The notes: generated by a model from the sequence alone, not told the origin. Shown: positions 30,575 to 32,923, counted from the stretch's first letter. The stretch: DNA of 63,563 nt from Gekko japonicus (GCF_001447785.1 NW_015173718.1:178539-242101); one strand, 5' to 3'. Program-made: numbers and translations.

Positions 30575-32582
30575 GTAAGTCTGCAGTTCGATTGTAATGT
30601 TTCCCTTGTAGTTCATGGATGCTGATCCTTACTGTTCAATTTAGGGTTAGTCTGGACTAACTAGGGACTGCGGTGGCTCAAGTGGTTAAGACGCTGAACT
30701 GCAGGCTGTGGAAGGTCAGTCGTTCAGCAGTTCGAGACCCGAGTGTGCCGCATGACGGAGTGAGCTCCCGTCTCTAGTTCCAGCTCCTGCCAGCCTAGCA
30801 GTTCGAAAGCAAGACATTGCAAGTAGATAAATACCACTTCAGTGGGAAGGGAACAGCGTTCCGTGCGCCTTGGTGTTTAGTCATGCCGGCCACATGACCA
30901 CGGAAATGTCTCCGGACAGCGCTGGCTCTTCGGCTTTGAAACGGAGATGAGCACCGCAACCCTAGAGTCGGATTTGACTGGCTTTCGAGCATGGGAGAGC
31001 TTTACCTTTACTGAACTGTTTCCATGTCAAACACAGGGTGGAGATTCCACATGTCCTGCAACGAACCTTTCAACAGCAGCTGTCCTCTGATTTGCTCTCC
31101 ATGGGTGTATCAGGGAGCAGCCTGCATATTTCATACGTGAAGCTGGATCTTTCAGGTCCATTCCGCTAACAGAAGTGCATTCTTCCAGCACAGGGAATTA
31201 GAGATGGACACAAACCGAACAGCAAAGCAAATTTCGTTGTGAATTTTGCCCTGTTCACGGTTCACAAACAGAAGTTTTTGACGGGTCTACCATCACGATC
31301 TTCCACAGATGTTTAAAGCAGTTCATGGTGGTCCGTAGATGGAGCAAAACCCCTCAAAAACAGCTTAGCTGTTTCTGGCTATCTTGTGCAGTCCCTTTAA
31401 ACTTAAGAGACTAAAGAGACAACCCAAAAAACAGCTGCATGGCAGGGAGGTACTCGATGCCACTCAGCTGTTTCAGGTTGTCTTGTGTGGTACCTTTAAA
31501 GTTTAAAGAGACTGCAGAATACAGTCTGAAACACTGAGCTCACTTGTGCAGTCCCTTTAAAGTCCCTTGGGTGCTCCGCAGCTCACCCTCTGGATGCAGG
31601 CCTAATGCCAAACCTACAGCTCTATTGACTTGCTAAACTCTGGTTAGTTTAAAGGGACTGCCCAAGACAGCTGACTTCTGCAATCCCTTTAAAGTTTAAA
31701 GGGACTGCACAAGACAGCTCAAAACAGCTGAGAGGTGGGGAGCAAGCTGCTCCCCATTGCTCAGCTGTTTTTCGGGCTTTCTGCAAACCCCGTTGAAAGG
31801 GACTTCAGTTTGGCCACGAACCGCATTCTCCTGGTTTGTGCCCATTCCTCCAGGGAATGTTCTGCTGGAGGAAAGTGTCACCATTGGTAGACTGAATTTG
31901 CACAATCCAACCTCCGATGTGTTTACAGGTAAATCCAGGCACAAGGGGTGTTCTACATTCAAACGATTTGTTCAGCTAGTGCCGGGTGCCCAAGGTGAGG
32001 GGGGTTAGATTTACATTTTGCAAATAAGAGCCACTCCCCAGTGCTAAGTGGGGAACCATTTTTGAAATCGAGTTGCATGTTACAAGTGACACTGTATTGC
32101 AGCTGGGTGTCTGTTTGTGGAGAGGTTGCTTTTCAAAGGGGAAAATAATCCTGCCAGGCCTGTGTGAGCCCTTGGGTGCTCCGCAGCTCACCCTCTGGAT
32201 GCAGGCCTAATGCCAAACCTACAGCTCTATTGACTTGCTAAACTCTGGTTGTGTTGGAAAGCTTTTCAGGATCAGCGATGCTTTTTATCCCCCGCCCCCT
32301 CCTTAGTTTTGGGCAGACATTGAAGGGCCAACATGAGATTTCTTACAAGGCCCTGACCAAAATCCTTGTCCCTCTTACTTTGAAGTTCACACCTCTCAGC
32401 AGAGGTGGGAGGGAATCTCTTCCTTGTGTTTTGGTGGTATGTTTTCCTCCAGACTGGCTCGAGCTGTGTCCTTGAAGAAGAGGGAGGTATATTTATCTCA
32501 GACAAAAAAGGACACATAAATAAGCCCACTCCTAGTCTGCCTCCCCCCTCCAATTAAGAAGCCTCTCTCCTCTTTTTAGAGC

Positions 32583-32833
32583 CAGTTTGGTATAGTGGTT
32601 AAGTGCGCGGACTCTAACCTGGGAGAACCGGGTTTGATTCCCCACTTCTCCACTTGCAGTTGCTGGATGACCTTGGGCAAGCCATAGTTCTGTCAGAGCT
32701 GTCATTGAAAGGGGAGCTCTCTCAGCCCCACCTCCTCACAGGGTGTCTGTTGTGGGGAGGGGAAGGGAGAGGACTTTGTAAGCCGCTCTGAGACTCGCAG
32801 TGAAGGGCCAGGTATAAATCCAATCTCTTCTTC
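32583..32833 (+). mobile_element. Squam3-like SINE inserted at the ACTL6A exon 13 acceptor
   Basis: Flanked by TAGAGC at 32577-32582 and 32834-32839; its tail runs directly into the acceptor AG. Confidence 0.9.
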
Positions 32834-32836
32834 TAG

Positions 32837-32923
32837 AGCATGCGGCTGAAGTTGATAGCCAACAACACGACTGTGGAGCGGCGGTTTAGTTCATGGATCG
32901 GCGGCTCCATTTTGGCTTCTCTG
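32837..32923 (+). CDS. ACTL6A: ACTL6A exon 13
   Basis: cttcttctag|[29 protein letters not shown]|gtgagt. Confidence 0.95.

Follow-up and report, generated by a model that had tools for sequence, protein, structure and literature searches.

A Squam3B3-type SINE at the exon 13 splice acceptor of gecko ACTL6A has probably rebuilt the 3' splice site, with a similar arrangement at exon 10

The window (the whole 63,563-nt stretch of Gekko japonicus DNA analyzed here, GCF_001447785.1 NW_015173718.1:178539-242101) carries exons of ACTL6A (BAF53A), which we take to be an essential gene encoding a chromatin-remodelling subunit. In protein searches against human ACTL6A, in which each exon was searched singly, exons 9, 10, 12, 13, and 14 were colinear with the human protein and differed from it by one substitution altogether. 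Exon 9 corresponds to residues 257-276 and exon 14 to human residues 404-429; the remaining three are as follows.

25285-25399, + strand: ACTL6A exon 10, beginning with the third base of codon 277 and continuing through residues 278-315; acceptor AG at 25283-84
30479-30574, + strand: ACTL6A exon 12, residues 343-374; donor GTAAGT at 30575, phase 0
32837-32923, + strand: ACTL6A exon 13, residues 375-403, 29/29 identical to human; donor GTGAGT

Because the residue numbering runs without a gap from exon 12 through exon 14 (343-374, 375-403, 404-429), the AG at 32835-36 is the only acceptor of exon 13 that yields the conserved protein, as a first-pass annotation of this sequence had claimed. The acceptor of exon 10 is likewise fixed by the protein, given the residues of exons 9 and 10 and the division of codon 277 between them (CA|G).

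Two other exons are each present twice in the assembly at 100% identity. Exon 8 occurs at 22033-22229 and again at 22370-22566, the pair lying on either side of an 18-N gap (22230-47), and exon 11 occurs at 26334-26609 and 26801-27076 within a gapless 467-bp tandem repeat. Both doublings probably arose in assembly; genuine ones would provide extra in-frame exon copies.

Inspection of the sequence leading into exon 13 gave the order cctctctcctcttttt, AG AGC (AG at 32578-79), cagtttggtatagtgg...ccaatctcttcttct, AG (32835-36), and AGC ATG CGG, made up of the following elements.

32562-32577, + strand: uninterrupted 16-nt pyrimidine tract cctctctcctcttttt, the putative ancestral tract of exon 13, now upstream of the SINE
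32578-32579, + strand: upstream (decoy) AG, derived from the SINE head, (G)AGAGCC, or else from duplication of the acceptor; splicing here would lengthen the transcript by 257 nt
32578-32834, + strand: Squam3B3-type SINE in sense orientation, with a tRNA-like head, CORE fragment, L2-like 3' region, and short (CTT)n tail
32658-32659, 32724-32725, and 32740-32741, + strand: AGs of three strong cryptic acceptors in the SINE body, the use of which results in stops or a frameshift
32685-32687, + strand: in-frame TAG, reached when the upstream AG is used
32812-32823, + strand: candidate branch-point region gtataaatccaa, in the conserved 3' body of the SINE and the sole AG-free stretch at branch-point distance
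32824-32834, + strand: polypyrimidine tract of the exon 13 acceptor, tctcttcttct, 11 nt formed by the end of the SINE body and the (CTT)n tail
32835-32836, + strand: acceptor AG yielding the conserved protein

The letters at this junction are as the first-pass annotation described them, with a SINE at the acceptor of an exon that is identical to human residues 375-403 at all 29 positions. The end of the focal SINE, ...ggtataaatccaatctcttcttct, runs to 32834, so that its short tail (TTCTTCT) stops 2 nt before exon 13. The insert had been given a core of 251 nt; a SINE is indeed present, and it is better bounded at 32578-32834 (257 nt), the family head being GAGAGCC. The further claim that the exon 13 acceptor draws its pyrimidine tract from the SINE holds as well, inasmuch as the tract at 32824-34 is, on comparison with the other copies, the SINE's body end and (CTT)n tail. 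The last AG preceding the acceptor is at 32810-11, and the final 24 nt before the AG at 32835-36 are AG-free and pyrimidine-rich.

All AGs between 32400 and 32838 were tabulated with their reading-frame consequence. Splicing to 32580, via the upstream AG, would add 257 nt reading SQFGIVVK...GKP before the TAG at 32685-87, in agreement with the first-pass annotation; this stop sits 236 nt upstream of the last exon junction. Judged on tract length alone (16 pyrimidines at the upstream site vs. 11 at the exon 13 acceptor), the decoy looks no weaker than the acceptor that yields the conserved protein. The picture of just two competing sites is too simple, given the three further strong cryptic acceptors inside the SINE. 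The acceptor-like motifs between 32658 and 32741, each a pyrimidine-rich run followed by CAG, are conserved in other copies of the SINE, and sense Squam3B3 copies inside introns may generally be prone to exonisation.

The focal insert belongs to a single SINE family with approximately 17 copies in the 63.5-kb window, identified by BLAST and by an HMM built from the window copies. Common to these copies are a head, GAGAGCCAGTTTGG (the shared family head as given in the window copies being GAGAGCCAGTTTGGTGTAGTGGTTAAG), and a 3' end, GGGTATAAATCCAATCTC, that runs into (TTC)n; with the tail excluded, the HMM consensus measures 267 nt. The Squam3B3 subfamily of Gekkonidae is 267-271 nt long without its tail, carries a (CTT)n tail, and has an L2-like 3' end (PMC7983390, Table 1), and both the (CTT)n tail and the B3 consensus length were found in the window family. 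The published Squam3B head is GAGAGCCAGTKTGGTGTAGTGGTTAAG, with pol III box-like motifs, and that of the focal copy reads (T)AGAGCCAGTTTGGTATAGTGGTTAAG...GGTTTGATTCC; the window consensus agrees with the published Squam3B consensus. A by-eye comparison with Fig. S2B of PMC7983390 showed that the CORE fragment and L2-like 3' region are also present (…CTCTCAGCCCC ACCYCACCTCACAGRGTGT…GTWAGCCGCTYTGAGAC…AAATCCAA), and ARAGORN called no tRNA in the SINE head, as expected for a degenerate head. On its head, 3' end, (CTT)n tail, and 267-nt consensus, the insert is a Squam3 SINE of subfamily B3, which bears out and narrows the family name proposed earlier. Divergence of the focal copy from the window consensus is about 8%, and a 13-nt deletion is private to it, from which we conclude that the insertion is old, and neither a recent polymorphism nor a collapsed repeat.

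Other repeats accompany this family. Related SINE 3' fragments with (TAAA)n tails, which are of the Squam3A tail type, lie at 10162-10212 (- strand) and 19185-19231 (+ strand), and in intron 11 a Squam3B3 copy (28852-29029 and 29233-29318) is interrupted by approximately 200 nt of foreign sequence in a nested insertion. No convincing coding sequence was seen in a search for minus-strand exons next to the tails of the copies at 57762, 62735, and 8521. An Rfam scan of introns 12-13 up to 34600 returned nothing besides two sub-threshold matches to the mir-1781 model in intron 12, at 31416-31484 (- strand) and 31711-31783 (+ strand), with scores of 34.7 and 30.4 bits, where the gathering score is 68; the pair look like two copies of a hairpin-forming repeat.

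The string TAGAGC occurs both at 32577-82 and at 32834-39, and had been read as a 6-bp target-site duplication (TSD) consisting of the ancestral acceptor and the first codon of exon 13. The published Squam3B consensus opens with GAGAGCC, and Squam3 elements seldom make TSDs (PMC7983390). Since the family consensus begins in this way, a start shown exactly by three other window copies, the AGAGC at 32578-82 can be read as the SINE's own head, and the caveat already attached to the earlier reading, that AGAGC matches the 5' end of the SINE, was well placed. The T before the upstream AGAGC belongs to the T-run of the flank and the T before the downstream AGAGC to the SINE tail. Both copies of TAGAGC are in this way fully accounted for, as flank T-run plus SINE head in one case and as SINE tail plus AG plus exon in the other; with five of the six duplicated bases equal to the SINE head and every base otherwise explained, a 6-bp TSD cannot be shown. 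What is left over is a 5-nt identity of the SINE head (AGAGC) with the target (AG plus codon AGC), expected a priori about once in 1000, which fits either a short TSD joined via microhomology between head and target or coincidence.

The distinction between a TSD and none changes only whether the upstream AG is ancestral or SINE-derived, and the AG that had been described as stranded and ancestral may be no more than the head of the SINE. The empty exon 13 site would presumably read ...ctctttttAG|AGCATGCGG, the same string with or without a TSD. No clear TSD was found at the exon 10 copy described below or at most window copies, although TSDs resembling the tail may be concealed at those at 10994 and 22956. 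The earlier reading is thus supported in its acceptor anatomy, its SINE-donated pyrimidine tract, and its decoy, but not, in the form given, in its 6-bp TSD and stranded ancestral AG, and its restriction to two sites is too narrow.

Two further copies of the same type lie close to exons of ACTL6A.

24992-25276, + strand: another sense-oriented SINE of Squam3B3 type, whose (CTT)n-like tail stops 8 nt (gcctccag) short of exon 10
10707-11001, - strand: antisense Squam3B3-type SINE, its tail, as (AAG)n, beginning 28 nt past the exon 2 donor

The 5' junction of the exon 10 copy also leaves a pyrimidine stretch (ttgctttcta) followed by AG, and the empty site there would have read roughly ...ttgctttctgcctccAG|G. 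A full-length SINE thus lies within 10 nt of 2 of the 13 acceptors of gecko ACTL6A. When random placement of SINEs was simulated in the 25.3 kb of ACTL6A introns, one or more of the seven intragenic copies besides the focal one came to have its tail in sense orientation no farther than 10 nt from an acceptor with p 0.019. At least three of eight insertion points fell within 30 nt of an exon edge with p 0.0015, and at least two of the other seven did so, with the focal one given, with p 0.018.

The explanation that we favor, and consider likely as a whole, is that an old SINE at exon 13 rebuilt the acceptor and left a decoy upstream, and that the copy at exon 10 repeats the event. An ancient insertion of a Squam3B3-type SINE, mobilised by L2-type LINEs, would have struck the 3' splice site of intron 12 in sense orientation, no more than 6 nt from where the polypyrimidine tract meets the AG. 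ACTL6A would have survived because the 3' end of the SINE, an A-rich GGTATAAATCCAA stretch followed by CTCTTCTTCT, resembles a splice-acceptor region, so that the SINE end and the resident AG|AGC would together have formed a complete 3' splice site and become the constitutive acceptor of exon 13. The old tract, now 257 nt upstream and probably represented by the 16 pyrimidines at 32562-32577, would create the decoy by its junction with the SINE head's AGAG (or with a duplicated AG), and both the decoy and the cryptic acceptors inside the SINE would all yield stop-containing transcripts. Exon 10 would have undergone the same event.

That the AG at 32835-36 is the main site in vivo we infer from the fact that exons 13 and 14 have stayed perfectly conserved over the time in which the SINE diverged by about 8%. 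The branch point of exon 13 is almost certainly inside the SINE: a branch point farther upstream would have more than 25 AGs to skip, and the AG-free gtataaatccaa lies at the usual spacing. It is accordingly very improbable that the SINE is a passive passenger, with the ancestral branch point and tract upstream of 32578 still in use and the distal AG reached by skipping. Distant branch points do occur in some vertebrate introns, but the more than 25 AGs in 32578-32835, several of them in strong acceptor context, are incompatible with the AG-free zone that such an arrangement needs, and the AG-free, pyrimidine-rich 24 nt immediately before the acceptor also argue against it. Misplacement of the SINE beside exon 13 by the assembly has just as slight a chance of being correct. 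The identical doublings of exons 8 and 11, one pair of them around the 18-N gap, do point to local assembly errors in ACTL6A, but none touch the exon 13 junction; the interval 32500-32950 is free of gap or duplication, with both flanks unique, the focal copy is individually diverged and has its private 13-nt deletion, as a collapsed consensus would not, and exon 10 shows an analogous arrangement. Two DNA sequencing runs from the same organism contain about half of the words sampled from the stretch as a whole, and a homologous-protein word search with the 46-aa ORF spanning the SINE/exon 13 junction gave no candidate. Somewhat more can be said for a true 6-bp TSD, by which an intact ancestral acceptor upstream would compete in vivo and NMD of its product would set ACTL6A dose, an account that we nevertheless regard as unlikely. 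In its favor, 16 unbroken pyrimidines precede TAG|AGC at the upstream site, the stop 236 nt before the last junction makes its product NMD-eligible as predicted by the usual 50-55-nt rule, and a short TSD joined through microhomology would explain the 5-nt identity of head and target. Putative RNA runs (their kind was guessed) contain 0.28-0.32 of the words sampled from 30400-35800, compared with about 0.23 expected from mature exons by rough arithmetic, an excess that applies to the interval as a whole and is not diagnostic. Against these points stand the identity of AGAGC with the family's own head and the rarity of Squam3 TSDs, the lack of a clear TSD at exon 10, and the presence of at least three other cryptic acceptors, which make competition between just two sites an oversimplification.

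Bias at the level of the SINE family deserves closer consideration, and we hold it to be possible, if only tentatively. The (CTT)n tail would pair with the nicked target, 3' splice-site pyrimidine tracts would be preferred in an orientation-specific manner, and the tail would repair the acceptor, such that exons 10 and 13 of ACTL6A would be two products of the bias rather than lucky survivors. The occurrence of two cases in one gene (p approximately 0.02 for the second) is consistent with this, as is the position of three of the eight intragenic copies within 30 nt of an exon edge (p approximately 0.0015, or 0.018 given the focal copy). The 5' flanks of 6 of 14 copies match the phase of (CTT)n over at least 4 nt vs. 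a background of 14.5% (binomial p 0.0096, permutation p 0.012, in a test devised after the flanks had been seen), and the tail-like flanks of the copies at 10994 (TCTTCTT) and 22956 (CTCTTCC) point the same way. A link between tail repeat and target site is established for RTE-type SINEs (PMC6007223), which we count in favor of targeting. However, the pre-planned test of pyrimidine content was negative, with no enrichment in the 12 nt upstream of 15 copies (mean 6.1 vs. 6.0, p 0.44), and the (CTT)n motif test was post hoc; pyrimidine runs of at least 6 nt preceded 3 of 15 copies (p 0.05), or 2 of 14 without the focal copy. Moreover, for copies spaced at about 5 kb and acceptors at about 10 kb across about 48 Mb, rough arithmetic gives approximately five such cases from random, cost-free insertion, and tolerance without targeting may be enough. 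The general proposition that Squam3B3 prefers 3' splice-site tracts, by tail pairing and in sense orientation, repairs the acceptor, and leaves behind an upstream decoy built of the tract and the AGAG of its head is one that we consider doubtful. If targeting is real, a single SINE family would have rebuilt a whole class of acceptors in the essential genes of geckos, and each of these would carry an NMD-coupled leak tunable by tail length or by PTB/U2AF levels.

Under the favored explanation, rebuilding of the acceptor by the SINE, SINEs would have supplanted the pyrimidine tracts, and presumably the branch points, of two constitutive ACTL6A exons, in an arrangement that has persisted. If the decoys are used, ACTL6A would carry two constitutive NMD leaks and offer a natural system for the study of 3' site choice between sites 257-290 nt apart. 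The window SINEs resemble the published Squam3B3 in their head (GAGAGCCAGTKTGGTGTAGTGGTTAAG), CORE fragment, L2-like 3' region, and (CTT)n tail, and may share their scarcity of TSDs; the paper describing Squam3 is silent on position relative to splice sites and on effects on splicing (PMC7983390). Splice sites built by transposable elements are already known, and what appears to be new here is that old, sense, (CTT)n-tailed SINEs would form constitutive acceptors in an essential gene, at two of its exons.

The closest parallel is merle in the dog, in which a SINEC_Cf lies at the intron 10/exon 11 boundary of PMEL/SILV (PMC7349775, PMC6091007). In merle as in ACTL6A, the SINE sits on a 3' splice site and its tail serves as the polypyrimidine tract, and in merle the original and cryptic acceptors compete, with an outcome that depends on the tail (PMC7349775). 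The merle insertion is antisense, with its poly(A) tail read as poly(T) and a cryptic site within the SINE, has a clear 15-bp TSD, and is young, polymorphic, and phenotype-causing, whereas that in ACTL6A runs in the sense direction with its (CTT)n tail up against the exon, has no demonstrable TSD, and is old and apparently fixed. It also differs from merle in affecting an essential gene, in which use of the SINE-built site is obligatory, and in that competition between sites is here a prediction from sequence. In the exonisation of antisense Alu elements, a SINE likewise supplies the signals of a 3' splice site, both the AG and, as poly(T), the pyrimidine tract (PMC7349775); those antisense copies make new and mostly alternative exons, whereas the sense copy in ACTL6A replaces the signals of an existing constitutive exon.

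A study of how near to exons fixed transposable elements can lie found that human and mouse introns are poor in SINEs over the 100 bp next to exons, in what have been called "hazardous zones", and that only 10% of the full-length AluY elements lying less than 20 bp from an exon are near splice acceptors (PMC3088655). SINEs adjoining splice acceptors in mammals are either counter-selected or disease-causing, in contrast to gecko ACTL6A with its full-length SINEs within 10 nt of 2 of 13 acceptors. If the SINE-built sites are used cleanly, a sense pyrimidine-tailed SINE would be splice-neutral at zero distance, and the extent of the "hazardous zone" near exons would then depend on the tail chemistry of the SINE family concerned.
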